This document shows positions 3,572-56,821 of a stretch of 64,000 bases of DNA, piece by piece (within the stretch, counting starts at the first letter, position 1; the number at the start of each line of letters is the position of its first letter). Source of the DNA: Anaeramoeba ignava BMAN. Taxonomy: Eukaryota > Protista > Anaeramoebae. Location of the stretch: positions 620,001 through 684,000 of the forward strand of contig JAPDFW010000059.1 in NCBI GenBank assembly GCA_028826165.1. The letters run 5' to 3'. The notes below the pieces were generated by a model, which saw only the letters and a program-made list of their open reading frames with translations, was not told the origin of the DNA and did no database searches. The translations under genes and the position numbers were made by a program.

Positions 3572-3862
3572 AAATAAAATTAAAATTAAAATCAAAATTA
3601 AAATTAAAATTAAAATTAAAAATTAAAATTAAAATTAAAATTAAAATTAAAATTAAAATCAAAATTAAAATTAAAATTAAAATTAAAATTAAAATCAAAA
3701 AAATTTCAAAATCAAAATTAAAATTAAAATTAAAATCAAAAATCAAAATTAAAATTAAAATTAAAATTAAAATTAAAATTAAAATCAAAATTAAAATTAA
3801 AATTTAAATTAAAATTAAAATTCAAAATCAAAATTAAAATCAAAATCAAAATTAAAAATTAA
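3564..3862 (+). repeat. (AAAATT)n hexamer spacer
   Basis: Visible array between copies 2 and 3. Confidence 0.95.
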
Positions 3863-3903
3863 AAAATCATTTTTCATTTTTTTCATTTTTTTTCTTTTCA
3901 AAA

Positions 3904-5673
3904 ATGAATGATTGTTTATTTTTTGGAAGAAATGAATTCCCAAAACTTATCAAAAATGAACCAGAAGATATAATAAAACCAATTCAATTTAAATTTGAAA
4001 ATGAAAAAGAAAAACAAATTAAACAAATTTCTTCATCAGGTTATTCAACAATTTTCCTTTTTAAAAATGGAAAAGCAATAGAATATTTAAATGAAAATGA
4101 TTCAAAACAAAATCCTGAAAAAATCCAAATTGAAGAAAATATTCAAAAAGTAACTGTTGGTTCTGATAATGAAGCTATTTTAACAAAAGAAGGAAATGTA
4201 TTTGCCAAAGGAAACAATATTAATCCAAAAAATACAAAAGAATTTATCAATATTTCATCATTAATTGAAGATAAAAATGATAGAATAATTCAAGACATTG
4301 TTACTGGAGATGGTTCAATTTACTTATTAACTTCAAATGAAAATGTTTATGGAATTGGTTTAAATCAATTTGGTCAAATTGGTTTTGATTCTAAAACACT
4401 TCCAAAAACAGAAAAACCAATTTTAATGATGAAAAATGTTTCTAAAATATTTTCAGGAATTGATTCAGCTCATATTTTTCTTTTAAATTCAAATCAAGAA
4501 TTATTTGGATGTGGTGATAATAGTTCTAGTCAAATTGGATTAGGAAAATCAAGAAAAAAAGAAAAAAAAATCAAGAAATTAACCAAAATACAAAATATTC
4601 CAAAAGGTAAAATAATTTATATTCAATGTGGAAGTATTCATTCAATAATGTTGATTGAAAATGAAAATCAAAATCAAAATCCAAAAAGAAAACTTTATTC
4701 ATGTGGAAATTATCAATATAACGGACTTGGCAAAGATGAAAATGCTTATGAATTTACTGAAATCAAATCATCTTTATTTGAAAATGATGATGATGATATT
4801 CTTGATTTTTCTGTTGGATATACTCATACTTTGATTTTAACATCCAAACCAAAACTAATAGTATTTGGAGATAATTTTTATGGTCAATTAGGAACTGGAG
4901 ATACAAAAAATCAATTAATTCCAATTCAAATTGAACTTCCTAAATTAAGATTTAATGAAAATATTTCTAATTATTATCTTTCTTGTGGTTTTGATAATTC
5001 ATTTATTTATTATTCTCTTCCTTCTTTTTCCAATCTTGAAGAAGATTTGATAAAATTATTTGAAAGAAAAGAATTTTGTAATATTTCATTTAAAACCGAA
5101 AATGGAGAAATAATCAAAGCTCATAAATTAATATTGAAATATAGATTAAATCAAAATCAAAATGAAATTGAAAAACTTCAAAAAATTATTTCAAATAAAT
5201 CAATTAAAGAATCAAATCAAATATTTGAAATGATTTATTCAAACAGAATAATAAATCCAAAATTATATTCAGAAATTAAAGAAATTATAAATTCCAATGA
5301 AAAAATAGAAGAAACAATGAAAAGAATTTATTTAAATGAAAATGAAAATGAAAAAGATTTTATTATTGAAAAAAAAGAAAAACAATATAAATTTCCTAAA
5401 TTAATATTAATAATGAGAAGTGAATTATATCGAGGAATGTTTTTATCTGTAACAGAAGATAAATCAAATAAAGTTACAGATTATAGTGAATTAAGTAATA
5501 AATCATTTCAAATATTTGAATATTGGATTTATTCAAATCAAATTAAAGATGGAATTCAAATTACACAAGAAATTATTGAAGAATTAGAAACAGGAATTGA
5601 TTATTTTCAATTAAATCAAACAAATCCAAATTTATTTGATTTATTAATTAACAAATTTAATAATCAAAATTAA
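3904..5673 (+). CDS. RCC1-repeat + BTB-BTB protein, copy 3 (589 aa, intronless)
   Basis: Complete ORF, paralogue of copy 2. Confidence 0.93.
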   Translation: MNDCLFFGRNEFPKLIKNEPEDIIKPIQFKFENEKEKQIKQISSSGYSTIFLFKNGKAIEYLNENDSKQNPEKIQIEENIQKVTVGSDNEAILTKEGNVFAKGNNINPKNTKEFINISSLIEDKNDRIIQDIVTGDGSIYLLTSNENVYGIGLNQFGQIGFDSKTLPKTEKPILMMKNVSKIFSGIDSAHIFLLNSNQELFGCGDNSSSQIGLGKSRKKEKKIKKLTKIQNIPKGKIIYIQCGSIHSIMLIENENQNQNPKRKLYSCGNYQYNGLGKDENAYEFTEIKSSLFENDDDDILDFSVGYTHTLILTSKPKLIVFGDNFYGQLGTGDTKNQLIPIQIELPKLRFNENISNYYLSCGFDNSFIYYSLPSFSNLEEDLIKLFERKEFCNISFKTENGEIIKAHKLILKYRLNQNQNEIEKLQKIISNKSIKESNQIFEMIYSNRIINPKLYSEIKEIINSNEKIEETMKRIYLNENENEKDFIIEKKEKQYKFPKLILIMRSELYRGMFLSVTEDKSNKVTDYSELSNKSFQIFEYWIYSNQIKDGIQITQEIIEELETGIDYFQLNQTNPNLFDLLINKFNNQN

Positions 5674-5860
5674 AATTAAAATTAAAATTAAAATTAAAAT
5701 TAAAATTAAAATTAAAATTAAAATTAAAATTAAAATTAAAATTAAAATTAAAATCAAAATTAAAATTAAAATTAAAATCAAAATTAAAATTAAAATTAAA
5801 ATTTAAAATCAAAATCAAAATCAAAATTAAAATTAAAATCAAAATTAAAATTTAAAAAAT
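5666..5860 (+). repeat. (AAAATT)n hexamer spacer
   Basis: Visible array between copies 3 and 4. Confidence 0.95.
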
Positions 5861-5895
5861 CAAAATTCATTTTTCATTTTTTTTCTTTTTCAAAA

Positions 5896-7674
5896 ATGAA
5901 TGAAATTATATTTTTTGGAAGAAATGAATCTCCAAAACTTATCAAAAATGAACCAGAAGATATAATAAAACCAATTCAATTTAAATTTGAAAATGAAAAT
6001 GAAAATGAAAAAGAAAAACAAATTAAACAAATTTCTTCATCAGGTTATTCAACAATTTTCCTTTTTAAAAATGGAAAAGCAATAGAATATTTAAGTGAAA
6101 ATGATTCAAAACAAAATCCTTCAAAAATCCAAATTGAAAATATTCAAAAACTAACTGTTGGTTATGATAATGAAGCTATTTTAACAAAAGAAGGAAATGT
6201 ATTTGCCAAAGGAAACAATATTAATCCAAAAAATACAAAAGAATTTATCAATATTTCATCATTAATTGAAGATAAAAATGATAGAATAATTCAAGACATT
6301 GTTACTGGAGATGGTTCAATTTATTTATTAACTTCAAATGAAAATGTTTATGGAATTGGTTTAAATCAATTTGGTCAAATTGGTTTTGATTCTAAAACAC
6401 TTCCAAAAACAGAAAAACCAATTTTAATAATGAAAAATGTTTCTAAAATATTTTCAGGAATTGATTCAGCTCATATTTTTCTTTTAAATTCAAATCAAGA
6501 ATTATTTGGATGTGGTGATAATAGTTCTAGTCAACTTGGATTAGGAAAATCAAGAAAAAAAGAAAAAAAAATCAAGAAATTAACCAAAATACAAAATATT
6601 CCAAAAGGTAAAATAATTTATATTCAATGTGGAAGTATTCATTCAATAATGTTGATTGAAAATGAAAATCAAAATCAAAATCCAAAAAGAAAACTTTATT
6701 CATGTGGAAATTATCAATATAACGGACTTGGCAAAGATGAAAATGCTTATGAATTTTCTGAAATCAAATCATCTTTATTTGAAAATGATGATGATGATAT
6801 TCTTGATTTTTCTGTTGGATATACTCATACTTTGATTTTAACATCCAAACCAAAACTAATAGTATTTGGAGATAATTTTTATGGTCAATTAGGAACTGGA
6901 GATACAAAAAATCAATTAATTCCAATTCAAATTGAACTTCCTAAATTAAGATTTAATGAAAATATTTCTAATTATTATCTTTCTTGTGGTTTTGATAATT
7001 CATTTATTTATTATTCTCTTCCTTCTTTTTCCAATCTTGAAGAAGATTTGATAAAATTATTTGAAAGAAAAGAATTTTGTAATATTTCATTTAAAACCGA
7101 AAATGGAGAAATAATCAAAGCTCATAAATTAATATTGAAATATAGATTAAATCAAAATCAAAATGAAATTGAAAAACTTCAAAAAATTATTTCAAATAAA
7201 TCAATTAAAGAATCAAATCAAATATTTGAAATGATTTATTCAAATAGAATAATAAATCCAAAATTATATTCTGAAATTAAAGAAATTATAAATTCCAATG
7301 AAAAAATAGAAGAAACAATGAAAAGAATTTATTTAAATGAAAATGAAAATGAAAAAGATTTTATTATTGAAAGAAAAGAAAAACAATATAAATTTCCTAA
7401 ATTAATATTAATAATGAGAAGTGAATTATATCGAGGAATGTTTTTATCTGTTACAAATGATAAATCAAATAAAGTTACAGATTATAGTGAATTAAGTAAT
7501 AAATCATTTCAAATATTTGAATATTGGATTTATTCAAATCAAATTAAAGATGAAATTCAAATTACACAAGAAATAATTGAAGAATTAGAAATTGGAATTG
7601 ATTATTTTCAATTAAATCAAACAAATCCAAATTTATTTGATTTATTAATTAACAAATTTAATAATCAAAATTAA
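5896..7674 (+). CDS. RCC1-repeat + BTB-BTB protein, copy 4 (592 aa, intronless)
   Basis: Complete ORF, closest to copy 3. Confidence 0.93.
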   Translation: MNEIIFFGRNESPKLIKNEPEDIIKPIQFKFENENENEKEKQIKQISSSGYSTIFLFKNGKAIEYLSENDSKQNPSKIQIENIQKLTVGYDNEAILTKEGNVFAKGNNINPKNTKEFINISSLIEDKNDRIIQDIVTGDGSIYLLTSNENVYGIGLNQFGQIGFDSKTLPKTEKPILIMKNVSKIFSGIDSAHIFLLNSNQELFGCGDNSSSQLGLGKSRKKEKKIKKLTKIQNIPKGKIIYIQCGSIHSIMLIENENQNQNPKRKLYSCGNYQYNGLGKDENAYEFSEIKSSLFENDDDDILDFSVGYTHTLILTSKPKLIVFGDNFYGQLGTGDTKNQLIPIQIELPKLRFNENISNYYLSCGFDNSFIYYSLPSFSNLEEDLIKLFERKEFCNISFKTENGEIIKAHKLILKYRLNQNQNEIEKLQKIISNKSIKESNQIFEMIYSNRIINPKLYSEIKEIINSNEKIEETMKRIYLNENENEKDFIIERKEKQYKFPKLILIMRSELYRGMFLSVTNDKSNKVTDYSELSNKSFQIFEYWIYSNQIKDEIQITQEIIEELEIGIDYFQLNQTNPNLFDLLINKFNNQN

Positions 7675-11853: not shown

Positions 11854-12002
11854 ATCAATTTTCTTTTTTAATTTTCTTTTTTATTTTTTTTAATTGAAAA
11901 AGAGAGAAATTTGCAATGATTTTCTTTAAAAATTTAATTTTTAATTTTTAATTTTTAATTTTTAATTTTTAATTTTTAATTTTGAATTTGTTTTGTTATT
12001 AT

Positions 12003-15000
12003 TTAAATATTCCATGATTGAATATTAATTGAAGGATTTTCAGATATAATTTGTCTTCGAATAGAATTAAAAACACAAACAGGACAAGCTGTTGAAATTA
12101 ATTTCTGAGAAAAACATTCTGATAGTAATTTTATAGTGTAAGTTAATGAAAAAGGTAAATTTGAAACTCTTTGATAAAATTCTTGAAGTAAAGTTGAATA
12201 AAAAGCAGATTTTGGATAAAAATGACCACAAGAAAAAATAACAATTTGTTTAATATTTTCTTTTTCATCATCTTCATTTTGATTTTGATTTTGATTTTGA
12301 TTTTGATCGATAAGATTTTGGATTTGATTTTGATTTTGATTTTGATTTTGATTTTGATTTTGAATTTGATTTTGATTTAAATTTTGTATAAGTTTTTCAG
12401 TAAAATCGTTTTTATCTTGTTTATCAGATGTTTCTGATTTTTTTTGGAGAATTTTTGTGATAGTTTTAACTGGAGTAACTGGTTCAAAATGTGACAAACA
12501 AGCCAATTTCAAATACAAAGAGTTTCTTTCAAGAAGAACACCAGCAACCGAAGTTGATTCGTTTGTATCGAGATTGGAGAAGAGATTTGACTTGATTTGC
12601 GCGAGTGTTCCATTTGTTTCTGGGTTTGTTTTCTGTTCCTTATTGAATTCCTTAAACATTTTCAGCATTTTTTGTCTTAAAACTTTGAGATAGAATTTTG
12701 ATGAGAATGGAAGCAATAGAGGCAACCGCTCTTTGGTTAAGACTTCGATTTGTGGAGAGCCGCAAAGAGCGCTGAAGTATTTTAATAATTGGGGATATTT
12801 TTCAAGGGCAGCCTCTTCAAATAAGTCAATGGGAAGCTCCATTTTCTTCCAAAATAAAAGAACTCTTGTTATTAGATTTGTGATCATTTGATGCCCTTTT
12901 TTGGAGGGTTTTTCCTCTTTCACTTTCTTTAGGGCGAGCTGGAGAATGTTGAAAACTTGAGAAAGGATGTCTTGATACAAAGATTCTGAGTTGTGGAAGT
13001 TTTGTTCCCATTGGATAAAAAGCATTTTCAGTGCAAGTGTGAATTTGGAAATTTTCAGGTAAATCAATGAAGCAAAATTGTAGTTATTTGTGTCAATGCA
13101 TCTTTGAATAATGATGGGTGTTCTGTAAACACCGAAGAAATCATCGAGAATTTTCTCCAAATGTTGTTGAATGGATTTGATTTTTTGGATTTTCTGCATT
13201 TTTTGGATGACATTTTGATTTGGATATTTTTTGGGGGATTCTTTTTGATTTTGATTTTGTTTTTGTTTTTGTTTTTGATTTTGTTTTTGTTTTTGATTTT
13301 CTTTTGATTTTGTTTTTCTTTTTGATTTTCTTTTTGATTTTCAAATTGATGATATTTATTCAAAAGTATAAGAAAACAAGTGATATAAATTTCCAAAGAT
13401 TCTATGATATTGAGTTGGGATTGAGGGTCATTGGGGTCAATCAAAGGTTTTGGCTTTATATTATCAGGAGATGATTTTGTGGGGGAAGATGGGGGGAATG
13501 ATGTGAATAATTGACGTATATCTTGGGAGGGTTGGAACTGTGTGATGCAATTATTGAGAGTTTTTTCTGTGGAAAATGGAAGTATGTCGATTAAGAGCAG
13601 GTAATATTTGGAGATCTCTTTGCGCTCGTTTGTGATGATGAGGTCGATCTGTTGTTCGATTGTCAGAAAGGAGAGGAGACTGCCGCGACGGAAGTTGAGG
13701 ATGACATTTCCATAACCGTTTGAAATGAGCATATCGATGTCACGAGTGTTGAGGAAAAAATTGCTGAATTCAATAAGTTGTTCAAGAGCAGACTCGACAA
13801 TTTGTCTTGAGATTGCGACCTTGAAAAACTCCTGCTTGAACCCGTACATAAGAAAGAGACCCAGTGCGCGATTTGCGTTATAAAAAGTGTTTGTGGAAAG
13901 AAAATGTTCGAGATCGTTAGTCGTTGTTGAAATTTGGTCCTGGTTAGGCGAAACACCCGACTTGAACTGCAACAATTGCTGGACATAACACATTAGAAGA
14001 ATATCCGACATGACTCTTGCGGAATCGGCATAGAGGTTCTCGGGGAATTGAAGCGCGGCTTTGAGATGCGAAATTGCGACGTCGATCCTATCCACCTTGG
14101 CAAATTGGGTTACGATCTTATTTGTCTTCACGTTGGAAAGACAGTAGAGCTCGTGAGCCTGAACAAAGTTTCCTGCCTCAAATTGCTTGTCGGCTGCTTG
14201 TTCATACAGGGAAAGAATATTGAGGCCGAATGTTTTGCCCAAGGTCTCCGCTTCTGTGTAGGATGACTCCTGTATCAGTTGGTTGAAGATCTGCTCGGGA
14301 TGATACTTGGGAACTAATTCATAAACAGACTCGTTTGTCCACACATAGCAAATTGCTGGTGGTTCGAGATTTTTGCGCAAAATTCCTCCGATTGTTTCAT
14401 TCTCACCAAGTTTGAATCTTTGAACAACAGTTTCGTCGATGCGTTTATATGCCATCCTGGGCATTGAGTTGGTCGAGGAAATCGACAGGAATTTCGAGAT
14501 CACATCGATTTGATTGAACGTTCTTTTAGCCTCGTCTCTTGAAGACGCAATAAAAAAATTATCAGTGGAAACAACATGCATTGAAACTGGTGTGACATCA
14601 TAAACAAAAAGTGGATACGTTGTTAAATCGGGTTCGTAGAGCTCGAGCTTGTGCAATGAGGGGTCGTAAACGCTGACAAACATACGGCTTTCCGAGTGCT
14701 GGACAGCCAGTCTTGAGCCTTGAGAAAATTTGGTCGCTTCCATTAATATAAAAGGTGATTTCCCACTGTGCGTAATTACTGAGTGATACTGATGCTGATC
14801 ATCAAACTCCTCCAACAGCAACCGGTGGATCTTCCCTTGATACGTCGTGATTAAAATGAAACTCTGATCTCTGCTTTTTATCAACGTGATATCTTTTATC
14901 GGATTTTTTGACTGGACAACAAAATCTTCCATTGTCACAAGATCAACAAAATATATGCATCCCTTTGTTGTTGCCACAACCGCATAGTCTCTCGGCTCTC

Positions 15001-15676
15001 CGCGCTGAAGAGAATTCCCCTTCGTCATCCCCTTGCCTGTGTTGGATGGCCCAGATACGCCGCTGTCCTGTATCAGCCGCGAGCGCCACCATATGCAATC
15101 CGAGATATCCTCGTTTTTGCGTATTTTTTTCGTTAGTGATTTCAAGTACACTGTGTTTCGGTCGTGGATCTGAGACGGTATTTTCTTCTTGTTCGTCTTC
15201 GACATCTCCTCGTGCTGGCTTAGCATCCCTTTTTTTGTTTGTGTCGATGTTTTTTCGGAACCATCCAAATTTTTTTCCATTTCATTCAATTCATCAAAAC
15301 TTAACATTTTTTTAATAGACAAAAGAAGTGGGATAATTGTGATCACTGAATCAGAAGAAACAACAAGTAAAAACTCCGCGCTGGGCGACATTTCAATGCA
15401 TATGATTTCCTTGCTAATTGCCTTGTTTGGCGGCCACTTGATTTGCCTTATCCATCCAAGTTGATTTGCTGTTGAACACCGAATTGTTATGTGTCCTGTT
15501 GATATTGCTGCTACTAATATTGAGTATTTGCTGTTGAATTCTCGCGAAATTACTGATATAAATCGTCCTTTTGTTTTCGTTTTCGTTGTTGTTGTTGAAA
15601 TTGTCAGTATTTTTTCTAATGAGAACAATTCAAACTGATGGAATTTTTCATTTTCATTTTCATTTTTTTGATTCAT
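12003..15676 (-). CDS. N-terminal beta-propeller + alpha-solenoid + C-terminal Zn-finger protein (HOPS/CORVET/BLOC-2-like architecture), ~1220 aa; one frameshift near 13303
   Basis: ORFs 13064-15676 and 12003-13199 join by restoring one A in a CAAAAA repeat (..QKESPKKYPNQNVIQKMQKIQ..). WD-like motifs (IICIEMSPSAEFLLVVSSDSVITII), helical repeats (LYEQAADKQFEAGNFVQAHELY), C-terminal FSCGHFY...CPVC. Confidence 0.7.
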
Positions 15677-15803
15677 TTTTAATTTATAAAAAAAAAAAAA
15701 GGAAAAAAGAAAAAAAATGAATTTTAGATTTTTTTTATCATTTTAAATTTCACATTAAAAATAATAAAAAAAATTCAAATCCAAAAACTTCAACTTCAAA
15801 ACT

Positions 15804-18800
15804 TCAAAGTAAATTTATTTGATAATCTTTTTTTAATGTTTCTCTTGCAATATTTTCAAGATTTTCAATTAAATCATTCTTTTCTCCTTTTTTTGCTTTT
15901 GTTTCTGGATTTTTCACATTAAAATAAATTTCTTTTCCAAAAAGTTTTCTAGCAAAAGTAATTGATAAAGGATTTCTTTTTTGTTTTGTTTTATATTAAA
16001 AAAAAAAAGAGTGAAAAATTTTTTAAATTAAATAATTAATATATTATTTACTGTAAAATCATTTGAGAAACATTTGAATTTTTATTAAATTCACTATGAC
16101 AAATTGATGAATCTTGAGTAAAATCTTCTAGATTTGTTGAATTGGGAATTGTTTGTGTAATTCTTGATGTTTCATCATCAAACATTAAAAAATTATAATT
16201 TTCTCCATTTGTTAACTAAAAAAAAGTAATTAAATAATTTTGATTTTCTTTCTTAAAGTTTTTAATTTAAAATACTGTTGATTTTTTTTCAAGTAATTTT
16301 TTGGATTGTGGATTTTTAAATAAATTTTCAAGTTCTCGACTCATTTTTAAAAGTTTTGTTTTCAAATTATTCTATATATATATATTAATAATAAAATGTA
16401 TAATTTATCAACATTTTTCTTATTAAATTCAAAAATTTTATTTTGTTTTTAGAAATACAATTTTATCAATTGTTTGTTGATCATTCATTATATCAATTTC
16501 TGTAATAACTGCTATTGTGATTAAATCAAATCTAGTCATTCTTAATCCAAAATATTTTCCATCAGGGTAATTTTGAGTATAAACCTGAAGCAAACAAATT
16601 AATATTTAATTTAAATCAATTTTTAAATCGATATTAAAATTAATTAAATCAATTTTTTTTTGAAAATACTTTTGAAAGTTCTATTTGAGCACGGTTTAAA
16701 TTTGTTTCACTTGAAAAATTTTGAATTTTTGAAGAATCAAATTCTATAGATGTAATATTTTCCATTTCAATTCGATTTTCATTTATATTTAGATTTTTAA
16801 TATCATTTATATTTTGAAATTCATTTTGATTTTGATTTTCATTTTGATTTTGATTTTCATTTTGATTTTGATTTTCATTTAGATTTTGATTTATATTTTG
16901 ATTTATATTTTGATTTTGATTTTGATTTTGATTTTGATTTTGATTTTGATTTTGATTTTGATTTTGATTTTGATTTTGATTTATATTTTCATTTTGATTT
17001 ATATTTTGATTTTCATTTTCATTTTGATTTTGATTTTGATTTTGATTTTGATTTTGATTTTGATTTTGATTTTGATTTTGATTTATATTTTGATTTATAT
17101 TTTGATTTTCATTTTCATTTTGATTTTGATTTTGATTTTCATTTTGATTTTGATTTATATTTTGATTTTCATTTTGATTTTCAATTTTATTTTGATTTTG
17201 GTTTTGATTTATATTTTGATTTTGGTTTTGATTTATATTTTGATTTATATTTTGATTTTGATTTTGATTTTGATTTTGATTTATATTTTGATTTTGATTT
17301 TGATTTTGATTTTGATTTTCATTTTCATTTTGATTTTCAATTTGATTTTGATTTATATTTTGATTTTGATTTTGATTTTGATTTTGATTTTGATTTATAT
17401 TTTGATTTATATTTTGATTTTGATTTATATTTTGATTTTGATTTTGATTTTGATTTTGATTTTGATTTTGATTTTCATTTTCATTTTGATTTATATTTTG
17501 ATTTTGATTTTGATTTTGATTTTGATTTTCAATTTGATTTTGATTTTGATTTTTATTTTCATTTTGATTTTCATTTTGATTTTCAATTTTATTTTGATTT
17601 TGGTTTTGATTTATATTTTGATTTTGGTTTTGATTTATATTTTGATTTTGATTTTGATTTTGATTTTGATTTTGATTTTGATTTTGATTTTGATTTTGAT
17701 TTTGATTTTGATTTTGATTTTGATTTTGATTTTGATTTTCATTTTCATTTTGATTTATATTTTGATTTTGATTTTGATTTTGATTTATATTTTGATTTAT
17801 ATTTTGATTTTGATTTATATTTTGATTTTGATTTTGATTTTGATTTTGATTTATATTTTGGTTTTCATTTTGATTTATATTTTGATTTTGATTTATATTT
17901 TGATTTTGATTTTGATTTTGATTTTGATTTTGATTTTGATTTTGATTTATATTTTGATTTATATTTTGATTTATATTTTGATTTTGATTTTGATTTTGAT
18001 TTATATTTTGATTTTGATTTTGATTTTGATTTTCATTTTGATTTATATTTTGATTTTCATTTTGATTTTGATTTTGATTTTGATTTATATTTTGATTTTG
18101 ATTTTGATTTTGATTTATATTTTGATTTATATTTTCATTTTCATTTTCATTTTGATTTATATTTTGATTTATATTTTCATTTTCATTTTGATTTATATTT
18201 TCATTTTGATTTATATTTTGATTTATATTTTGATTTTGATTTTGATTTTGGTTTTGATTTTGATTTTATATTTTGATTTTGATTTTGATTTTGATTTTGA
18301 TTTTGATTTTGATTTTGATTTATATTTTGATTTTGATTTTGATTTTGATTTATATTTTGATTTTGATTTTGATTTTGATTTTGGTTTATATTTTCATTTT
18401 GATTTATATTTTGATTTATATTTTGATTTTGATTTTGATTTTGGTTTTGATTTTGATTTTGATTTTGATTTTGATTTTGATTTTCATTTTGATTTTGATT
18501 TTGATTTTCATTTTGATTTTGATTTTCATTTTGATTTTGATTTTCATTTTGATTTTGATTTTCATTTTGATTTTGATTTTCATTTTGATTTTGATTTTCA
18601 TTTTCAATTTCATTTATATTTTCATTTTCATTTATATTTTCATTTTCATTTATATTTTCAATTTCATTTTGATTTTGATTTTGATTTTGATTTTCATTTT
18701 GATTTTGATTTTCAATTTTATTTTGATTTTCATTTTGATTTATATTTTGATTTATATTTTGATTTTCATTTATATTTTGATTTTGATTTTCATTTTCATT

Positions 18801-20532
18801 TTGATTTTCATTTTCAATTTCATTTTGATTTATATTTTGATTTTGATTTATATTTTGATTTTGATTTATATTTTCATTTTGATTTATATTTTGATTTTGA
18901 TTTTGATTTATATTTTGATTTTGATTTTGATTTTGGTTTTGATTTTGATTTATATTTTGATTTTGATTTTCATTTTGATTTATATTTTGATTTTGATTTA
19001 TATTTTGATTTTGATTGTGATTTTGATTTTGATTTTGATTTTGATTTTGATTTATATTTTGATTGTTGTTATTTTCTAAAGGAATATTTTCTTCATTTGA
19101 AAATTCTTTTTGAAGTAATTTTTCATTAAAAATAAAAACAGGAACATTTTCAAGAGTTTCAGAATTTTGTAATATTTTCCCAATATTAGATAATGAATTT
19201 GTTGAAAATTTAGTTGAAAGGAAAGTTTTTGGAATATCATAATCATTTAAAGAGTTATCAATATTATTTGTTTGAAATGTTCTCCATTTATCATATTCAT
19301 CTTGTTTATAAAGTAATCTATAATAAATCCATCGAGTAATTTCCAAATCAAGATCTGTGCAAAGAACATTTGTTTGATAAAAAATAACTCCTCCAAAAAA
19401 ATTATCCCAATTTCTAATTTCTTGTAAAATTTGAGAAGCAAGAATGAAATAACGATTGAAAGTCTAAAAATTGATTCCAAAAGAAAATATTTAAAAAAAA
19501 TATTAATATTAATATTATTATTATTAAACTACAGGTGGTAATTCTAAATATGGAAGAATAGGAAAAGATGGAAAAAGATGTAAATTTGGTTCAAATAATT
19601 TTTCTGGTTGTATAATAAAAGGAATTAATTCTTCACCAGCTCTTGAAATAAATGTTTTGAATTCTTCGTCTGATCCTTGAGCCTTCTGATTTTTATTTTA
19701 ATTTTAATTTTGATTTTAATTTTGATTTTAATTTTGATTTTAATTTTGATTTTAATTTTAATTTTGATTTTAAATTTTAATTTTGATTTTAATTTTAAAT
19801 TTAAATTTTAATTTAAGTTTTGATTTTAATTTTAATTTTTATATTAATTTTAAGTTTTGATTTTAAATTTTAATTTTAATTTTAATTTTGATTTTAATTT
19901 TGATTTTAATTTTGATTTTGATTTAAATTTTAATTTTAAATTTTAATTTTAATTTTAATTTTGATTTTGATTTTTATTTTGATTTAAATTTTAATTTAAA
20001 TTTTAATTTTAATTTTAATTTTAATTTTAATTTTAATTTTAATTTTAATTTTGATTTTAATTTTGATTTTGATTTTAATTTTAATTTTAATTTTGATTTA
20101 AATTTTAATTTCTAATTCAGTTTTAATTTTAAAAACCATTTCAAGATGATCAAAAGAATGATTATAAAATTGAAAACATTTCAAAAAATCATCATGTTTT
20201 TTCATCAAAGAAGAATCAGTAGTTTTATCTTTTTGACCACAAAGAACAGTAACAATATTACCAAGTTTTTTGATACTCAATTTGATATGAGAAAGATTAA
20301 TAATTTCAAGTTTACGTTTTGCAAAGAGGCTCATGAAATGTTCTGTAGCAGTAATAATACCAGCAAGCATTTCTTGATTATTTGGTGGCATTTCACTTGG
20401 ATAAAAAAATATTACTCTTTCTGGATAATCCTCATTATCATCTGAAACATCCTGTTCATCATCTTCACGAAACCAAAAGTAACAACCTTCTTGAAGTAAT
20501 TTAGAATCGAATTCTGGTTCTGGTTCAAACAT
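15804..20532 (-). CDS. HPS4: HPS4-like tri-longin protein (BLOC-3 Rab32/38 GEF subunit); multi-exon (20532-20137, 19685-19533, 19463-~16670, then several short exons to stop at 15804); one frameshift near 18265
   Basis: Exon 1 IFFYPSEMPPNNQEMLAG..LSHIKLSIK..FQFYN matches HPS4 longin 1. Exon 3 ASQILQ..GGVIFYQTNVLCTDL matches longin 2. The last exon NPLSITFARKLFGKEIYF...ARETLKKDYQINLL* resembles the HPS4 C-terminus (..VNLL). CCZ1 is the less likely alternative. Confidence 0.82.
16800..19065 (-). repeat. ~2.3 kb coding hexamer repeat (AATCAA/AATGAA/AATATA; N-Q/N-E/N-I) inside HPS4
   Basis: Entered and left in frame with unique HPS4 sequence, apart from one indel. Confidence 0.85.
19690..20130 (-). 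repeat. Intronic (AAAATT/AAAATC)n array in HPS4 intron 1
   Basis: Reads (TTTTAA)n on + strand within intron 19686-20136. Confidence 0.9.
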
Positions 20533-48661: not shown

Positions 48662-50344
48662 TTAATTTTGATTATTAAATTTGTTAATTAATAAATCAAA
48701 TAAATTTGGATTTGTTTGATTTAATTGAAAATAATCAATTCCAATTTGAATTTCATCAATTATTTCTTGTGTAATTTCAATTCCATCTTTAATTTGATTT
48801 GAATAAATCCAATATTCAAATATTTGAAATGATTTATTACTTAATTCACTATAATCTGTAACTTTATTAGATTTATCATTTGTTACAGATAAAAACATTC
48901 CTCGATATAATTCACTTCTCATTATTAATATTAATTTTGGAAATTTATATTGTTTTTCTTTTCTTTCAATTATAAAATCTTTTTCATTTTCATTTTCATT
49001 TTCATTTAAATAAATTCTTTTCATTGTTTCTTCAATTTTTTCATTTGAATTTATAATTTCTTTAATTTCAGAATATAATTTTGGATTTATTATTCTGTTT
49101 GAATAAATCATTTCAAATATTTGATTTGATTCTTTAATTGATTTTTTTGAAATAATTTCTTGAAGTTTTTCATTTTGATTTTGATTTAATCTATATTTCA
49201 ATATTAATTTATGAGCTTCAATTATTTCTCCATTTTCGGTTTTAAATGAAATATCACAAAATTCTTTTCTTTCAAATAATTTTATCAAATCTTCTTCAAG
49301 ATTGGAAAAAGGAGAAAGAAAAGGAGAATAATAAAGAAATGATCTATCAAATCCACAATGAACATGATAATTGGAAATATTTTCATTAAATCTTAATTTA
49401 GGAAGTTCAATTTGAATTGGAATTAATTTTTAATTTTGATTTGGAAGTTAAAATCAAAGTATGACATTTCCAACAGAAAAATCAAGAATATTATCATCAT
49501 TTTCAAATAAAGATGATTTGATTTCAGTAAATTCAATTGATCCACATGAATAAAGTTTTCTTTTTGCATTTTCATCTTCAATCAACATTATTGTATAAGC
49601 ATATCCAGATTTAATATCAATTATTTTACCTTTTGGAATATTTTGGATTTTGGTTAATTTTCTAATTTTTGTTTCTTCTTTTCTTGATTCTCCTAATCCA
49701 AGTTGACCATCGTCATTATTTCCGCATACAACTAATTCTTGGTTTGAATTTAAAAGAAAAACATGAGCTGAAGTATTTCCTGAAAATATTTTAGAAACAT
49801 TTTTCATCATTAAAATTGGTTTTTCTGTATTTTTAAGTGTTTCAGAATCAAAACTAAGTTGGCTATATAGATTCGAACCAATTCCATAAGCATTTTGATT
49901 TGAAGTTAATAAATAAATTGAATTTCTTCCAGAAACAATATCTTGAATTATTCTATCATTTGTATCTTTAATTAATGATGAAATATTGATAAATTCTTTT
50001 GGATTTTTTGGATTAATATCTTCTCCTTTGGCAAATACATTTCCTTCTTTTGTTAAAATAGCTTCATTATGATAACCAACAGTTACTTTTTGAATATTTT
50101 CTTCAATTTGGATTTTTTCAAGATTTTGTTTTGAATTTCTTTCATTTAAATATTCTATTGCTTTTCCATTTTTAAAAAGGAAAATTGTTGAATAATTTCC
50201 TGATGAAATTTGTTTAATTTGTTTTTCATTTTCATTTTCATTTTCATTTTCAAATTTAAATTGAATTGGTTTTGTTATTATATTTGGTTTATTTTTAATA
50301 AGTTTTGGATAATTATTTAAACCAAAAAATATAATTTCATTCAT
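48662..50344 (-). pseudogene. RCC1-BTB-BTB copy A, disrupted (internal deletions ~49538 and ~49430, frameshift)
   Basis: ORFs 49454-50344 and 48662-49288 are the two halves of one family member; the NGLG loop and the last GxNxxGQLGTGD motif are missing. Confidence 0.8.
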
Positions 50345-50388
50345 TTTTGAAAAAGAAAAAAATGAAAAAATAATTTTTGATTTTAATT

Positions 50389-52019
50389 TTAATTTTGATT
50401 TTGATTATTAAATTTCTTAATTAATAAATCAAATAAATTTGGATTTGTTTGATTTAATTGAAAATAATCAATTCCAATTTGAATTTCATCAATAATTTCT
50501 TGTGTAATTTGAATTTCATCTTTAATTTGATTTGAATAAATCCAATATTCAAATATTTGAAATGATTTATTACTTAATTCACTATAATCTGTAACTTTAT
50601 TAGATTTATCATTTGTTACAGATAAAAACATTCCTCGATATAATTCACTTCTCATTATTAATATTAATTTTGGAAATTTATATTGTTTTTCTTTTCTTTC
50701 AATTATAAAATCTTTTTCATTTTCATTTTCATTTTCATTTAAATAAATTCTTTTCATTGTTTCTTCAATTTTTTCATTTGAATTTATAATTTCTTTAATT
50801 TCAGAATATAATTTTGGATTTATTATTCTGTTTGAATAAATCATTTCAAATATTTGATTTGATTCTTTAATTGATTTTTTTGAAATAATTTCTTGAAGTT
50901 TTTCATTTTGATTTTCATTTAATCTATATTTTAATATTAATTTATGAGCTTCAATTATTTCTCCATTTTTGGTTTTAAATGAAATATCACAAAATTCTTT
51001 TCTTTCAAATAATTTTATCAAATCTTCTTCAAGATTGGAAAAAGGAGAAAGAAAAGGAGAATAATAAAGAAATGATCTGTAATCTCCACAATAAATATGA
51101 TAATTGGAAATATCTTCACTAAATCTTAATTTAGGAAGTTCAATTTGAATTGGAATTAATTGATTCTTTGAGTTTTAAAATCAAAGTATTAACATTTCCA
51201 ACAGAAATATCAAGAATATTATCATCATTTTCAAATAAAGATGATTTGATTTCAGTAAATTCATCGCTATCTGTATATTGGCCAAGTCCATTAACTACAT
51301 AATCTCCAGTTGAATAAAGTTTTCTTTTTGTTTTAAATTCAACCAACATTATTGAATGGAAATATCCACATTGAATATCAATTATTTTACCTTTTGGAAT
51401 ATTTTGGATTTTGGTTAATTTATGGATTTTTTTTTCTTCTTTTCTTGATTTTCCTAATCCAAGTTTACTATGGTTATTATCACCACATCCAAATAATTCT
51501 TGATTTGAATTTAAAAGAAAAACAGAATAAGAAAAGGTTCCTGAAAATATTTTAGAAACATTTTTCATCATTAAAATTGGTTTTTTTGTTTTATCAAGTG
51601 TTTCAGAATCAAAACTAAATTCAGTAGCAGTATTATCACCAATTCCATAAGCATTTTGATTTGAAGTTAATAAGTAAATTGAATGAGCTCCACAAACAAT
51701 ATCTTTAATTATTCTATCATTTTTATCTTCAATTAATGATGAAATATTGATAAATTGATTTAGATTATTTGGATTAATATCTTTTCCTTTGGCAAATACA
51801 TTTCCTTCTTTTGTTAAAATAGCTTCATTTCTATAACCAACAGTTACTTTTTGAATATTTTCAATTTGGATTTTTTCTTCTTTTTCATTTAAATTTGTTT
51901 TAATTTTCATTTTCATTTTCATTTTCATTTTCAAATTTAAATTGAATTGGTTTTTATTTTGGTTTATTTTTGAAAAGTTTTGGAGAAGCATTTAAACCAA
52001 AAAATATAATTTCATTCAT
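50389..52019 (-). pseudogene. RCC1-BTB-BTB copy B, disrupted (early stop ~51955, deletions ~51895 and ~51170)
   Basis: ATG at 52019 (MNEIIFFGLNASPKLFKNKPK*); propeller half frameshifted, BTB half intact. Confidence 0.8.
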
Positions 52020-52069
52020 TTTTGAAAAAGAAAAAAATGAAAAAATAATTTTTGATTTTAATTTTAATT

Positions 52070-53700
52070 TTAATTTTGATTATTAAATTTGTTAATTAAT
52101 AAATCAAATAAATTTGGATTTGTTTGATTTAATTGAAAATAATCAATTCCAATTTTAATTTCATCAATTATTTCTTGTGTAATTTGAATTTCATCTTTAA
52201 TTTGATTTGAATAAATCCAATATTCAAATATTTGAAATGATTTATTACTTAATTCACTATAATCTGTAACTTTATTAGATTTATCATTTGTTACAGATAA
52301 AAACATTCCTCGATATAATTCACTTCTCATTATTAATATTAATTTGGGAAATTTATATTGTTTTTCTTTTCTTTCAATTATAAAATCTTTTTCATTTTCA
52401 TTTTCATTTAAATAAATTCTTTTCATTGTTTCTTCAATTTTTCATTTGAATTTATAATTTCTTTAATTTCAGAATATAATTTTGGATTTATTTTGGAATT
52501 GTTTGAATAAATCATTTCAAATATTTGATTTGATTCTTGAATTGATTTGTTTGAAATAATTTCTTTAAGTTTTTCAATTTCATTTTGATTTAATCTATAT
52601 TTCAATATTAATTTATGAGCTTCAATTATTTCTCCATTTTCGGTTTTAAATGAAATATCACAAAATTCTTTTCTTCCAAATAATTTTATCAAATCTTCTT
52701 CAAGATTGGAAAAAGGAGAAAGAAAAGGAGAATAATAAAGAAATGATCTGTAATCTCCACAAGAAATATGATAATTGGAAATATTTTCATTAAATCTTAA
52801 TTTAGGAAGTTCAATTTGAATTGGAATTATTTGATTTTGTATCTCCAGTTCCTAATTGACCATGTTAAAATCAAAGTATGGTTATCTCCAACAGAAAAAT
52901 CAAGAATATTATCATCATTTTCAAATAAAGATGATTTGATTTCAGTAAATTCATAAGTATTTTCATTTTTGCCAAGTCCATTATATCGATAATATCCACA
53001 TGAATAAAGTTTTCTTTTTGGATTTTGGTTTTCATTTTCATTTTCAATCAACATTATTGAATGAAAATATCCACATTGAATATCAATTATTTTACCTTTT
53101 GGAATATTTTGGATTTTGGTTAATTTTTGGATTTTTTCTTGCTTTCTTGATTCTCCTAATCCAAGTTGACCATATTAAATAATTCTTGATTTGAATTTAA
53201 AAGAAAAATGGAATAAAGAATTTCCTGAAAATATTTTAGAAACATTTTCATCATTAAAATTGGTTTTTCTGTTTTTAAGTGTTTCAGAATCAAAACCAAG
53301 TTGACTGAAGTTAATAAATAAATTGAACTATCTCCAGAAACAATATCTTGAATTATTCTATCATTTTATCTTCAATTAATGATGAAATATTGATAAATTC
53401 TTTGGCAAATACATTTCCTTCTATTGTTAAAATAGCTTCATTTCTATAACCAACAGTTACTTTTTGAATATTTTCAATTTGGATTTTTTCTTCTTTTTCA
53501 CTTAAATATTCTATTGCTTTTCCATTTTCAAAAAGGAAAATTATTGAATTATTTCCTGATAAAATTTGTTTAATTTGTTTTTCATTTTCATTTTCATTTT
53601 CATTTTCAAATTTAAATTGAATTGGTTTTTTTATTTTATATGGTTTATTTTTGAAAAGTTTTGGAGAAGTATTTAAACCAAAAAATAAAATTTCATTCAT
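52070..53700 (-). pseudogene. RCC1-BTB-BTB copy C, heavily disrupted (deletions ~53400, ~53306, ~53176, ~52863 plus homopolymer indels)
   Basis: Fragments 53353-53700, 52827-53054, 52423-52692 and 52070-52426 are collinear with the intact copies. Confidence 0.82.
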
Positions 53701-53833: not shown

Positions 53834-56821
53834 TCATCTTGCGAAAACATCTTCAGTCCAAGCATAGAAATCATAACCATCATCAAGTTTAGGCGCAGTT
53901 TTTGAGATGTAATCGATATCATGGTCATCCATAACAAGTTCCATTAAGTCTTTCTTAGCGACTTTAAAACCACGATTAATCAAAATGAATGAGTTGATGA
54001 TTTCGTCTTTTGTATCAGTATCACCGAAAATGACGATCATAAAGTCCTTGAAGCGCTCATAGGAGATTTCATTACCATCACCGTACTCCTGCATTATCTT
54101 GGCAATTTCCTTAGGGGAGCGTTCCTCACCGAGAGAATAAAGACAAGCAGTAAGTTCTTTTCTGTCAATAGTGCCGGAATTATCGAAATCAAATTGTTTG
54201 AAGTTTTCTTCGATTTCCTGCATTTGTTCCTCAGTGATGCCTCGGAGTTTCTGGTGCTCGATTTCCTCCTCAAGCATTTTCTTCTTGCGTGTCAAGAAGA
54301 TTTCAAATTGTTCAAATTGAACAAGAACGTCTTTAAGCGTTAGACTTGTGTGTCTGTTATTTTGGATTCCTTTTTTTTCCATCTCGTCCTGAAGGGATTT
54401 AAGCGGGTCAAGCTTTTTCTTTTCGCTTGGGATTGATGAGATGTTTTTGGTGACAAAGTTGAGTTGGCCTTCAAGAGTGTCTTTTGAGATTGTAATTTTG
54501 TCTTTTTGTTCGGAAATCCATTTTGAAAACGGTTCGGCCATTTGCGCAAATTTCTTGCACAGCGCGTCGTTGTCTCTCTGGCGCTTGAGCTCTGCGTCGT
54601 AAGCGGACTGTCTGTCTGAGATGGCTTTTTCTAGCGAGCGAAGTGCGGATTCTGCCTGGTTGAGATCGTATGTTGAGTAGGGGTTTTCTGTGACAGATAA
54701 AGCGTCCATTTGTTTTTTAGTTTTTTGGATCGCTTCTTTTTTTTTATTTGCTTGTGAACGTGCGTCGGTTGTGAGTTTTTCGAGAGTTTTCTGGTAGTTT
54801 TCGACCTCTTCGAGAGTGAATCCGAAGTCATGAAGACCTGCATCTTCGATAGCGAATTTCATGAATTTAAGATAGTCGCTTGAGAGATCGGCGAATTCAA
54901 GACGAAGACGTTCTTTTTCTTGTTCGGTTGCAAGTGAGTGATCGAGATACTTTTTTTTTTCTTGAGCCAAAGTAACGAATTCTTCAAGCGCTGCGTTGAT
55001 TGTGTCGTGTCTGTCCTGGATGTCCTGTAGCTTGTCTGCGCCGAAGCTCTTGTTCTGGTACTGTCGCAGATCGAAGATGTATTGGGAAAGATTCGACTCG
55101 TATTTCATTCCCATGATTTCGTTTCCAAAACGGACAAATTCATTGATTGTTGTTTTTTTTGATGTTTCAATATCTTTTTGGGTTGAGTCGAAAATATTCA
55201 GGTATTTTCTTGCTTGATAAACAGAAGAGATCTCCTCGTGCGTTTGGAGATTTGTTCTTTTGGACTCTGCCCATTCGTTGATTTTGTCGAATTGGTTGTG
55301 GTGGTTGTCGTTGAGTTCCTGGACATGTTCAATGAATTCTTCTCTTTTCAAATGGTCATCAAGAATGACTTTTTTTTGCTTAGCCAAGTCGTTGAGAATT
55401 TTGAACTTGCTGTCAACATCTGCATCTCTTGATTCGATGTGTTTCTGATTTTCGTATTTCTCTTTTTTAAGCTCTGCAGAAAGACTTTTAAGCTTAGCAA
55501 CGCCAGTGGCGATCATTGAAGCGTTTTCCTTAACGACACCGTCCAAAATTCTTAATGCCAATTGGGCTTCTGAGACGGAGCTGATTTCCTCGCGGATCTC
55601 GAGGTATTCTTGCTTGTCCTTGCAGTAATCCGCAATTTTGTTGTATCGCGATTCGTGCTGCTGTGCAAGATTCACAAGTCGTAATTGTCGGTTGAGTTCG
55701 GCGTGAAGCGCGATTTTTCGCTCCTTCTCGCACTCTTCCAAATGAAGCATATCTTGCTCAACTTCTTTCAATGAGCACCCCTTTTCTGGCTTGAATTCGG
55801 GGCGTTTGTGGTGTGCAAGACGCATTGCTAGATTGTTGTAATTTGACTCCAAATTGAGCTGATCCGAAATCAACGAACTTTTGTCTTTTGCTTTATAATC
55901 ATAGAACTCTTCCAAACGTCTTTTTGCGCCTGCCATTGTGTTGTCGATTGTGCGGTCTTCAAGAACTTTCTCGACTTTCTTGAGAGTTGCCTTGAAGTTT
56001 CTTGCTGTTTTGTTGTATTCAGCTTTCAAACGGTCGTTCTCCTTTGTTAATAGAATTAACTTCTTAATTCTTCTGGCTGCCAAATCAAGTTTTCTTTGCT
56101 CCGCAATTCCGTAATAATACTCACTGACATAAACAACCATTGAATTTTCGTCGAGTCTTCTAATTTCATCAGGGGTTATATACTGTTCCAAAGCGAAGTA
56201 TTTCTCTGCGGCATCTTGGGCGGTTTTTAACGTCTTTATTGGATCGCTTGAATCAAGACTTTCCCAGTCGATCATCTTGGGTCTGTGCTTGTGGATGATT
56301 GCGCACAAGGCCATTCCGTCTGCAAAACTTTTCTTAAAGTCCGTTATTTCAACGCCTTTATATCCGGCAGTTTTGTTTTTGCACCACATCAACAACGCAT
56401 CCTTTGCGTTAAGTGCCTCGCCACCGCTGCCGTCGTCGATCTTGATGTACTTCATCATAATAGCCCAGACCAATGCAAGCGTCCCTCTTTGATCCCCTTT
56501 TTCAAGTTGTTCTGCTGACGGCTTCACTTTCATGTCAACCCCTTTGCTCCATGCGAATTTTAATCCGTTGTTTAGGTTGTCGATACGGTGAATCGACATC
56601 TTTGGCTTCGCTACGTACTTTCCATCGTACTTACTTTCACTTAGAACTTCTATTAAGTTGATGAGCAATACTCCATCTTTAATGTCTTCTACTACATCGT
56701 TAACTTGTATTTCTGGTCGTGTGCGCAGTAGTTTTTGTTTTACCCATCGTGAAAAGATTTTTCGTTGCAATCGAACCCAATCTTGATTTTTTGGTCCTGC
56801 AGTTCTTCCTGTTCTTGACAT
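53834..56821 (-). CDS. ACTN: Alpha-actinin-like protein (CH-CH, spectrin-like rod, EF hands), 995 aa, intronless
   Basis: WVRLQRKIFSRWV, DIKDGVLLINLIEVLS, AKDALLMWCKNKTAGY..ITDFKKSFADGMALCAIIHKHRP, GITEEQMQEIEENFKQFDFDNSGTID. Confidence 0.95.
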   Translation of the reverse strand: MSRTGRTAGPKNQDWVRLQRKIFSRWVKQKLLRTRPEIQVNDVVEDIKDGVLLINLIEVLSESKYDGKYVAKPKMSIHRIDNLNNGLKFAWSKGVDMKVKPSAEQLEKGDQRGTLALVWAIMMKYIKIDDGSGGEALNAKDALLMWCKNKTAGYKGVEITDFKKSFADGMALCAIIHKHRPKMIDWESLDSSDPIKTLKTAQDAAEKYFALEQYITPDEIRRLDENSMVVYVSEYYYGIAEQRKLDLAARRIKKLILLTKENDRLKAEYNKTARNFKATLKKVEKVLEDRTIDNTMAGAKRRLEEFYDYKAKDKSSLISDQLNLESNYNNLAMRLAHHKRPEFKPEKGCSLKEVEQDMLHLEECEKERKIALHAELNRQLRLVNLAQQHESRYNKIADYCKDKQEYLEIREEISSVSEAQLALRILDGVVKENASMIATGVAKLKSLSAELKKEKYENQKHIESRDADVDSKFKILNDLAKQKKVILDDHLKREEFIEHVQELNDNHHNQFDKINEWAESKRTNLQTHEEISSVYQARKYLNIFDSTQKDIETSKKTTINEFVRFGNEIMGMKYESNLSQYIFDLRQYQNKSFGADKLQDIQDRHDTINAALEEFVTLAQEKKKYLDHSLATEQEKERLRLEFADLSSDYLKFMKFAIEDAGLHDFGFTLEEVENYQKTLEKLTTDARSQANKKKEAIQKTKKQMDALSVTENPYSTYDLNQAESALRSLEKAISDRQSAYDAELKRQRDNDALCKKFAQMAEPFSKWISEQKDKITISKDTLEGQLNFVTKNISSIPSEKKKLDPLKSLQDEMEKKGIQNNRHTSLTLKDVLVQFEQFEIFLTRKKKMLEEEIEHQKLRGITEEQMQEIEENFKQFDFDNSGTIDRKELTACLYSLGEERSPKEIAKIMQEYGDGNEISYERFKDFMIVIFGDTDTKDEIINSFILINRGFKVAKKDLMELVMDDHDIDYISKTAPKLDDGYDFYAWTEDVFAR

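Follow-up and report, generated by a model that had tools for sequence, protein, structure and literature searches.

Three broken copies of a gene that encodes an RCC1 propeller followed by a BTB domain occupy 53700-48662, minus strand, of the window, the 64,000-nt stretch of the Anaeramoeba ignava assembly sequence that was analysed, and their large deletions all lie in the propeller half, where deletions in decayed members of this family are biased towards hypervariable loops. The explanation that we favour, and to which we give about an even chance, is that these copies (D1, D2 and D3) are real, old and dead, that conversion has homogenised their scaffold and BTB sequence, and that deletions have arisen where heterology between loops interrupts homology. 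Positions, lesions and junctions are collected in Table 1.

Table 1. RCC1-propeller/BTB copies, their deletions and the neighbouring anchor gene in the window (the two numbers of a junction are the flanking positions).
Feature	Position	Strand	Deletions and remarks
Fourth family copy	1-1329		Cut off by the start of the window
Three intact paralogues (596, 589 and 592 aa)	1781-7674	+	References
D3, decayed copy	48662-50344	-	Propeller deletions of 12 (polymorphic site), 36, 1 and 53 nt; BTB half a clean 208-codon open frame
D3 large-deletion junctions	49542-49535; 49430/49429		36 nt; 53 nt
D3 last-blade junction	49429-49430	-	53 nt lost
D2, decayed copy	50395-52019	-	Propeller deletions of 6, 62, 15 (D1 has the same 15), 3, 15 and 52+7 nt; BTB half a clean 210-codon open frame
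D2 large-deletion junctions	51895/51894; 51175-51170		62 nt; 52+7 nt
D2 last-blade junctions	51170-51175	-	52+7 nt lost
D1, decayed RCC1-propeller + BTB copy	52070-53700	-	Directly downstream of alpha-actinin; 13 lesions: propeller deletions of 15, 3, 30, 1, 37, 2, 1, 2, 16, 38 and 2 nt; BTB-half deletions of 6 nt (common polymorphism) and 1 nt
D1 large-deletion junctions	53404/53403; 53306/53305; 53177/53176; 52864/52863		30 nt; 37 nt; 16 nt; 38 nt
D1 last-blade junctions	52838-52864	-	38-nt and 2-nt deletions; GxNxxGQ loop gone
Alpha-actinin gene, intact (995 aa)	53834-56821	-	41% GC; unique anchor of the D1-D3 locus

The family numbers about 1,200 copies in A. ignava, with motif counts of 1,270 for the BTB half versus 1,148 for the propeller. 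The intact copy at 1781-3568 matches the Pfam families PF25390 (1e-42), PF00415, PF13540 and PF00651; in D3, the propeller ORF hits RLD/RCC1 families and the BTB ORF hits PF00651. Constant propeller codons depart from the family consensus at 3.6% (D1), 7.8% (D2) and 5.7% (D3) of positions, versus a mean of 7.0% in intact copies, and BTB codons at 1.2%, 3.7% and 1.2%, respectively, versus 5.1%. By domain order and near-identity of the scaffold, D1-D3 are thus assigned to the A. ignava RCC1-propeller + BTB expansion. A word search with a D3 junction fragment returned only three A. ignava proteins at NCBI and no independent assembly. The animal RCC1-plus-BTB proteins RCBTB1/2 and IBtk have the same domain order, an RCC1-like propeller and then BTB, but are single-copy and conserved, whereas the A. 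ignava family is lineage-specific, has some 1,200 copies and carries hypervariable loops. A paralogue of the alpha-actinin gene is found on a second contig, C60, and its downstream neighbour is likewise a deletion-bearing RCC1-BTB copy, in the arrangement seen at D1.

Lesions in D1-D3 were called with MAFFT and by pairwise alignment against the intact paralogues and the family consensus. The first-pass annotation had described eight multi-nucleotide deletions, all in the propeller half; every one was recovered where it had been placed, at consensus nt <1230 (the chance of all eight falling in the propeller is about P=0.05). Its claim that the GxNxxGQ loop of the last blade (codons 324-326) had been lost from all three copies with different breakpoints also held, the missing consensus nucleotides being 944-981 in D1, 943-1005 in D2 and 961-1013 in D3. 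The same is true of the BTB halves, which show just 3- and 6-nt repeat-length changes that are seen in intact copies too, plus a 1-nt deletion at 52443/52442 in D1, whose BTB half is frameshifted. Reading frames are broken by deletions of 37, 16, 38, 62, 59 and 53 nt, D2 has an in-frame TAA close to its 5' end, and the longest ORFs in D1-D3 encode 118 to 296 aa, versus 589 to 596 aa in intact copies.

Nearly all deletions had been said to remove a loop. All eight do touch a hypervariable codon, but 6.2 of 8 would be expected to do so (P=0.10). Together they have taken out 27 hypervariable codons where 16.8 would be expected (P=0.007). The comparison of deletions with loops was widened to 19 unselected large deletions in 13 decayed copies, where the bias was clear: 18 touch a hypervariable codon, against 12.2 expected (P=0.001), and 58 such codons are lost, against 29.6 (P<5e-5). 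Hypervariable bases make up 26.8% of the deleted sequence versus 12.9%, a 2.1-fold excess; the other 73% is conserved, and several deletions take at least 30 nt of invariant sequence. Deletion edges tend to be flush with loop clusters, the left edge at a cluster start in 7 cases versus 3.5 expected (P=0.046) and the right edge at a cluster end in 8 versus 3.3 (P=0.010), with no enrichment for the opposite pairings. The aligner does not create this bias, as 376 simulated deletions gave 1.70 called versus 1.67 true. Seven of the 19 deletions are multiples of three, which equals chance expectation, so they have not been filtered by selection for an open frame. The microhomology that had been noted at junctions stood only in part: AAAG is present at the 30-nt junction of D1, but across 32 large deletions microhomology against the consensus averages 1.28 nt, a chance level (1.10 expected, P=0.24). 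Cryptic splicing or a retrocopy origin was rejected for the deletions, the deleted segments lacking GT..AG ends.

Gapped-pattern counts over the whole genome, together with 48 copies drawn at random and 10 selected ones, served to assess how common such lesions are; the copies sampled are about 60 of roughly 1,200, 10 of them picked for a last-blade deletion. Of 585 scorable copies, 10 have a shortened last-blade interval, with at least 8 different junctions among them, and the seven such copies outside the window are all on C60. For a BTB interval of equal size the count is 12 of 934, 11 of which share a single 14-nt variant, and only one of the shortened BTB intervals is in an RCC1 gene (propeller versus BTB within RCC1 genes, Fisher P=5e-4). 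Dispersed solo BTB-tail fragments in the genome carry this truncating 14-nt deletion. None of 45 randomly sampled copies had a deletion of at least 25 nt, and further large propeller deletions were present in about 8 of the 10 copies with a last-blade deletion, the neighbours of which are decayed too; large deletions are concentrated, with several in one copy, in a small number of dead arrays at the D1-D3 locus and on C60. Common descent of the deleted copies was rejected, since they are scattered in trees and form no clade. Their only sister pair is two adjacent copies on C60, at 253,725 and 255,561, with 91% loop identity; one of the two has a private 40-nt deletion flanked by a GAAGA direct repeat, which we take to be a real mutational signature in this one case. 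As to small lesions, 24 of the 45 sampled copies are broken solely by 1-nt indels, without nonsense codons, and 1-nt indels elsewhere in the family are as frequent in the BTB half as its length would predict.

Several observations directly indicate that the family undergoes concerted evolution by gene conversion. At third codon positions the alpha-actinin paralogues of the two syntenic loci are 58.5% identical, versus 95.8% for the adjacent RCC1-BTB copies (D1 against its C60 counterpart), and this difference implies that conversion resets the substitution clock of the copies. Over 296 nt of the BTB half (consensus 1332-1628), D2 and D3 show 100% identity, versus 95.9% at constant sites of the propeller; the 14-nt BTB variant seen in the dispersed solo fragments recurs in the full-length gene L035; and trees of the propeller and of the BTB half disagree. 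In their BTB halves, deleted copies are nearer the consensus than intact copies are (P=0.03). Deleted copies showed no excess of private substitutions, a result that is uninformative on relaxed constraint because conversion is expected to reset the clock.

On the favoured explanation, D1-D3 would occupy an old locus, an alpha-actinin gene and then an RCC1-BTB copy, the arrangement that C60 also has. The data show that ectopic conversion from the many intact relatives keeps overwriting their conserved sequence and so erases the record of point substitutions. The BTB half, about 550 nt with uninterrupted 96-99% identity to more than 1,200 donors, could have nearly every lesion repaired. Homology along the propeller, by comparison, would be broken every 50-90 nt by hypervariable loop codons, and recombination intermediates may hold unpaired bubbles at the loops, where breaks could be resolved by deletion. 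Deletions made in this way would take the loop with them and would often stop exactly at its border. Selection would remove them from working genes, and in dead arrays several could accumulate per copy. The first-pass annotation had proposed loop-targeted breakage or failed gene conversion; the loop bias, the flush edges and the indications of conversion support this in part, and failed conversion is a reasonable mechanism because conversion is directly indicated in the family. On the favoured reading, the loop bias would be left passively by recombination between paralogues with divergent loops, and not by a dedicated loop-cutting machine.

An error of assembly or polishing is the rival that we take most seriously, although we consider it unlikely. 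The true copies would be intact or less damaged, and long-read consensus (ABruijn, Racon, Nanopolish) would have dropped sequence where reads from paralogues or haplotypes disagree, a loss that base-only short-read polishing could not restore. The assembly does come from a 2017-era nanopore pipeline in which Pilon was run with '--fix bases' only, a setting that we count both for and against this account, and it fits the 24 of 45 copies broken solely by 1-nt indels without nonsense, as well as the 1- to 2-nt homopolymer deletions within about 60 nt of large ones, which are expected if such stretches were unpolishable. DNA runs contain just 0.42-0.60 of the sampled 31-mers of the stretch (four runs, one sample), which also fits an artefact; no RNA run was among those listed. 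Deletion edges that match the borders of variable clusters, too, would be expected of an artefact, but lesions are not restricted to positions where paralogues disagree, only 26.8% of deleted bases being hypervariable, and loops are equal in length among paralogues, so misaligned reads should give mismatches and not gaps of 30-60 nt. Errors of this kind in collapsed repeats resemble D1-D3 in that indel-type lesions fall where paralogues differ and the sequence is consensus-like elsewhere; they are usually short, however, whereas here they are of 30-62 nt, remove mostly conserved bases and lie at two anciently paralogous loci. The clustering of cases on C60 counts for an artefact, but the two loci that bear deletions share alpha-actinin synteny as ancient paralogous segments, and the consensus-like sequence of deleted copies, without private substitutions, is independently explained by concerted evolution. 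Also hard to reconcile with an artefact are the size and setting of the array, just 5 kb between unique error-free genes, the private deletion with its 5-nt direct repeat, and the 45 other copies, none affected though the loops are common to all.

If the deletions are real, neutral decay at sequence hotspots might produce them. The only stable microhomologies in DNA of 80% A+T would be the glycine codons (GGA/GGT) on either side of each RCC1 loop; slippage between them, or end joining, would delete loops and spare a BTB half that is poor in such motifs. GG dinucleotides are indeed denser in the propeller (24.4 per kb) than in the BTB half (5.5 per kb), breakpoints are closer to GG than random ones (P about 0.02 in both sets), and both edges lie at GG in 3 of 9 last-blade deletions (P=0.013). 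Against this, both edges coincide with GG in none of the unselected deletions, microhomology as a whole does not exceed chance, and GG is confounded with loop borders because each loop follows directly on a glycine codon. Nor would hotspots explain why copies with 6-13 lesions keep clean BTB halves, since 1-nt indels elsewhere in the family strike that half proportionally. We regard this account as improbable. Still less probable, and in our view quite a small chance, is an active diversifier, a dedicated activity that nicks or breaks hypervariable loops and leaves deletions as products of mis-repair. It would account for the loop enrichment and flush edges, and for the same loop being struck with different breakpoints in D1-D3 and in the C60 sister pair. 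Yet most of the deleted sequence is conserved scaffold, the events are limited to a few dead arrays, and the sole recurrent breakpoint motif is the GG of glycine codons, part of conserved coding sequence; with no deletion of at least 25 nt among the 45 random copies, the earlier suggestion of by-products of a diversifier active across the repertoire is unsupported. Selection might instead retain BTB-only remnants, whether as decoys or to regulate the Cullin-3 pathway, while the propellers decay, as the 208- to 210-codon open BTB frames of D2 and D3 and the solo BTB-tail fragments dispersed in the genome could suggest. Those open frames start with TTG (in a table-11 listing) without an upstream ATG, and the first ATG leaves at most 150 aa; the D1 BTB half is frameshifted, the dispersed fragments carry the truncating deletion, and the motif counts reveal no large BTB-only excess. 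Homogenisation accounts for BTB conservation more simply, without selection, and we think a decoy role very improbable indeed.

Several known systems offer comparisons. In families under concerted evolution (rDNA, primate Y ampliconic genes, Trypanosoma VSG, Plasmodium var), as here, paralogues are far closer to one another than is the flanking DNA, pseudogenes participate and mosaic tracts occur; unlike in those families, conversion in A. ignava appears to spare, and perhaps create, length lesions at hypervariable loops, and dead copies lose the variable parts rather than store donor cassettes. Systems with donor pseudogenes (chicken Ig pseudo-V, VSG, Anaplasma msp2, Borrelia vls) likewise combine a constant scaffold with variable segments across a large family, in which numerous broken members lie close to intact ones. 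The A. ignava family differs in having no known expression site and in the rarity of its broken copies (1-2%); and since the variable loops are exactly what these copies lack, they cannot act as donors of diversity. Birth-and-death families such as olfactory receptors and plant NLR clusters share tandem arrays with dead members, in which whole arrays decay jointly, but their pseudogenes gather substitutions and nonsense codons, whereas the A. ignava copies have almost no excess substitution and lesions that are nearly all deletions.

These results bear on how the loops of the A. ignava family diversify while the scaffold stays constant. Concerted evolution holds the scaffold, with enough strength to hide the age of copies that lie beside a neighbour gene saturated at silent sites, and once selection is off, the lesions that remain are deletions biased to loop borders, as expected from recombination between paralogues whose loops diverge. 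In this assembly 1-nt indels interrupt roughly half of the sampled 'genes', so copy counts and selection analyses need validation at the level of reads; should the large deletions prove to be artefacts, they would be a warning for all analyses of repeat families in this assembly. That loops are preferred sites of breakage, whether in recombination between paralogues or through a dedicated activity, is a doubtful proposition. If it is true, a protist would vary the binding face of a germline-encoded library of intracellular receptors by a process whose fossil traces are the deletions in its dead arrays.

The three decayed RCC1-propeller/BTB copies D1, D2 and D3 were aligned to intact copies and to a consensus built from 21 intact family members. 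Every deletion listed in the first-pass annotation was reproduced at its coordinates, and the deletion pattern it described is confirmed. All eight large deletions (16 to 62 nt) lie inside the propeller; the GxNxxGQ loop of the last blade is absent from each copy, with different breakpoints; and the BTB halves carry just 3- and 6-nt length variants, also seen in intact copies, plus one 1-nt deletion in D1. The window is ∼20% G+C. The alpha-actinin gene upstream of D1 has 41% G+C, against ∼20% for the genome; its composition, and that of a second G+C-rich region, may reflect strong codon bias in highly expressed genes.

Features of the window discussed in the text (window coordinates)
Feature	Position	Strand	Description
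Intact paralogues	1781-7674	+	589-596 aa; same family as D1-D3
Second G+C-rich region	12000-16000		32-37% G+C (genome ∼20%)
Head-to-tail repeat	16600-19350	+	∼200 units, 12- and 18-nt spacing, within a 747-codon open frame
D3	50344-48662	-	RCC1-like propeller + BTB; third tandem copy
D2	52019-50395	-	RCC1-like propeller + BTB; second tandem copy
D1	53700-52070	-	RCC1-like propeller + BTB; first of three tandem copies after alpha-actinin
Alpha-actinin	53834-56821	-	Intact, 995 aa; CH, spectrin and EF-hand domains

Hypervariable codons, defined by an amino-acid entropy of ≥1.5 bits among 42 copies, make up 56 of the 410 propeller codons and fall into 26 short clusters, 18 to 30 codons apart. At this density a long deletion readily touches a loop. 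All eight deletions do so, against 6.2 expected (P = 0.10); the hypervariable codons lost number 27, against 16.8 expected (P = 0.007). The chance that all eight would fall within the propeller is about 0.05. Given these chance levels, the evidence from the window alone is modest.

Motif searches of the 42.8-Mb assembly gave 1,270 BTB and 1,148 propeller matches. We examined 48 copies, from 200 kb fetched around motif hits and from the window; 45 of them form a random sample, comprising 21 intact, 21 interrupted and 3 heavily diverged copies. None of the 45 carries a deletion of ≥25 nt. A full ORF is missing in 24, and 21 of these are broken by short indels alone, mostly one or two of 1 nt, essentially without nonsense codons. 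Among the short indels of the sampled copies, 46% lie in homopolymers of ≥4, and some are shared, site for site, by unrelated copies; they are either residual long-read errors or the product of an indel-dominated mutation spectrum. In L023, L030 (e.g., L030:2369-2901), L024 and C62:419406-419884, stretches between copies match consensus nt 1212 to 1513, the first-BTB part of the gene, at only 66 to 70% identity. The matches overlap and are staggered, and the stretches resemble a degenerate tandem repeat that arose from this segment.

Gapped-pattern counts over the whole genome extended the search for large deletions. The last-blade interval (consensus nt 875 to 1043) has normal length in 575 copies and is shortened in 10, namely D1, D2, D3 and seven copies at six loci on contig C60; two more propeller intervals showed large shortenings at D1 and on C60 only. 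A BTB control interval of equal size (nt 1483 to 1643) has normal length in 922 copies and is shortened in 12, of which 11 represent one 14-nt variant. This identical BTB-tail deletion (consensus 1573) occurs at eleven loci on nine contigs (L032 to L042, including G000:C64:1239386, C69:236174, C71:736610 and C71:1202967) and creates a stop ('...TSNK*'). Ten of the loci are solo ∼330-nt BTB-tail fragments without an upstream propeller, and not RCC1 genes; the eleventh, L035 at C71:1202967, is an RCC1-BTB gene of full length, cut to 530 aa by the variant.

All deletion-bearing copies found outside the window lie on C60 (1.65 Mb), at ≥6 separate loci (positions 81890, 230627, 253725, 255561, 927789, 1028500 and 1634008; also 1568519), a restriction with a chance of ∼3e-9 from length alone. 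The seven C60 copies have further large deletions elsewhere in the propeller, clean BTB halves with one exception, and neighbors that are decayed too. A GAAGA repeat, the mark of ordinary mutation, flanks one private 40-nt deletion in a sister pair.

Loop bias was then assessed in 19 large deletions from 13 copies, leaving out the last-blade interval used for selection. Eighteen include at least one hypervariable codon (against 12.2 expected, P = 0.001), and together the 19 remove 58 such codons against 29.6 expected (P < 5e-5). Of the deleted bases, 26.8% are hypervariable, compared with a background of 12.9%. Deletion edges match the outer borders of loop clusters: left edges coincide with a cluster start 7 times (3.5 expected, P = 0.046) and right edges with a cluster end 8 times (3.3 expected, P = 0.010), with no enrichment for the reverse pairings. 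Simulating 376 deletions in intact copies and recovering them with the aligner used above shifted their placement negligibly (1.70 hypervariable codons per called deletion, 1.67 per true one), so the loop bias really belongs to the assembled sequence. The bias is two-fold and not exclusive, as 73% of deleted bases are conserved scaffold.

At constant codons, D1-D3 and the C60 copies have diverged no more than intact copies, and no excess of private substitutions was found in them. This appears to clash with an old pseudogene and, at face value, favors an assembly artefact, the first-pass annotation's own alternative. The clash is resolved by synteny and by a contrast in identity. On C60, one copy (C60:1027770-1029484, minus strand) is the downstream neighbor of an alpha-actinin paralogue, ∼127 nt away, and matches D1 in order, orientation and spacing. 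Over their last 171 residues the two alpha-actinins (L024, G000:C60:1027000-1030126, for C60) share 86% protein identity, but their third codon positions agree at only 58.5%. For D1 and the C60 copy, third-position identity within constant codons reaches 95.8%. Barring a later replacement of the RCC1-BTB copies, the segment is of ancient origin and the RCC1-BTB genes in it have been homogenized with the family. The shared arrangement points to a segmental duplication of ancient date; about 11 alpha-actinin paralogues are present in the genome. Further signs of conversion are the D2/D3 BTB identity (100% over 296 nt, against 95.9% at propeller constant sites), conflicting propeller and BTB trees, the presence in L035 of the variant typical of dispersed solo fragments, and BTB halves nearer the consensus in deleted than in intact copies (P = 0.03). 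We conclude that the family is under concerted evolution.

An artefact stays a live, if less likely, alternative. The assembly came from an ABruijn 1.0, Racon, Nanopolish and Pilon "--fix bases" pipeline (PMC11550330), and the many 1-nt indels across the family make base-level quality in repeats uncertain. However, the large deletions remove mostly invariant sequence, paralogues' loops are equal in length, the array spans just 5 kb between unique error-free genes, the lesions repeat at two anciently paralogous loci, and no such lesion is seen in 45 other copies that have these loops. Hotspots set by the sequence itself, at glycine codons, have some support: GG is denser in the propeller (24.4 per kb) than in the BTB half (5.5), and breakpoints lie closer to GG than random placement would put them (P about 0.02), but GG positions are confounded with loop borders and microhomology is at chance overall.

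The lesions are deletions confined to the propeller, biased to loops and concentrated in a few dead arrays. That distribution, with no large deletion in the random copies, gives no support to a dedicated loop-cutting diversifier or to the proposal that the deletions are by-products of active diversification. The suggestion of failed gene conversion is plausible and has partial support from the conversion signs and the loop bias. The BTB half offers ∼550 nt of unbroken identity with >1,200 donors, and lesions there would be converted away; BTB-only decoys are unnecessary to account for its cleanness. In the propeller, loop heterology would interrupt homology every 50 to 90 nt, recombination intermediates would hold unpaired bubbles, and mis-resolution could leave deletions edged at the bubble border. 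Selection would purge these from working genes, and dead arrays would retain them.

The domain architecture is that of animal RCBTB/IBtk proteins; RCC1 is not mentioned in the main text of the genome paper (PMC11550330). In its population genetics the family resembles the VSG, var, rDNA and Y-ampliconic families, which undergo concerted evolution, and birth-and-death families with pseudogenes. Pseudogene donor repertoires keep their variable segments, whereas the dead A. ignava copies have lost theirs. Any count of "1,200 genes" is affected by the short-indel interruptions.
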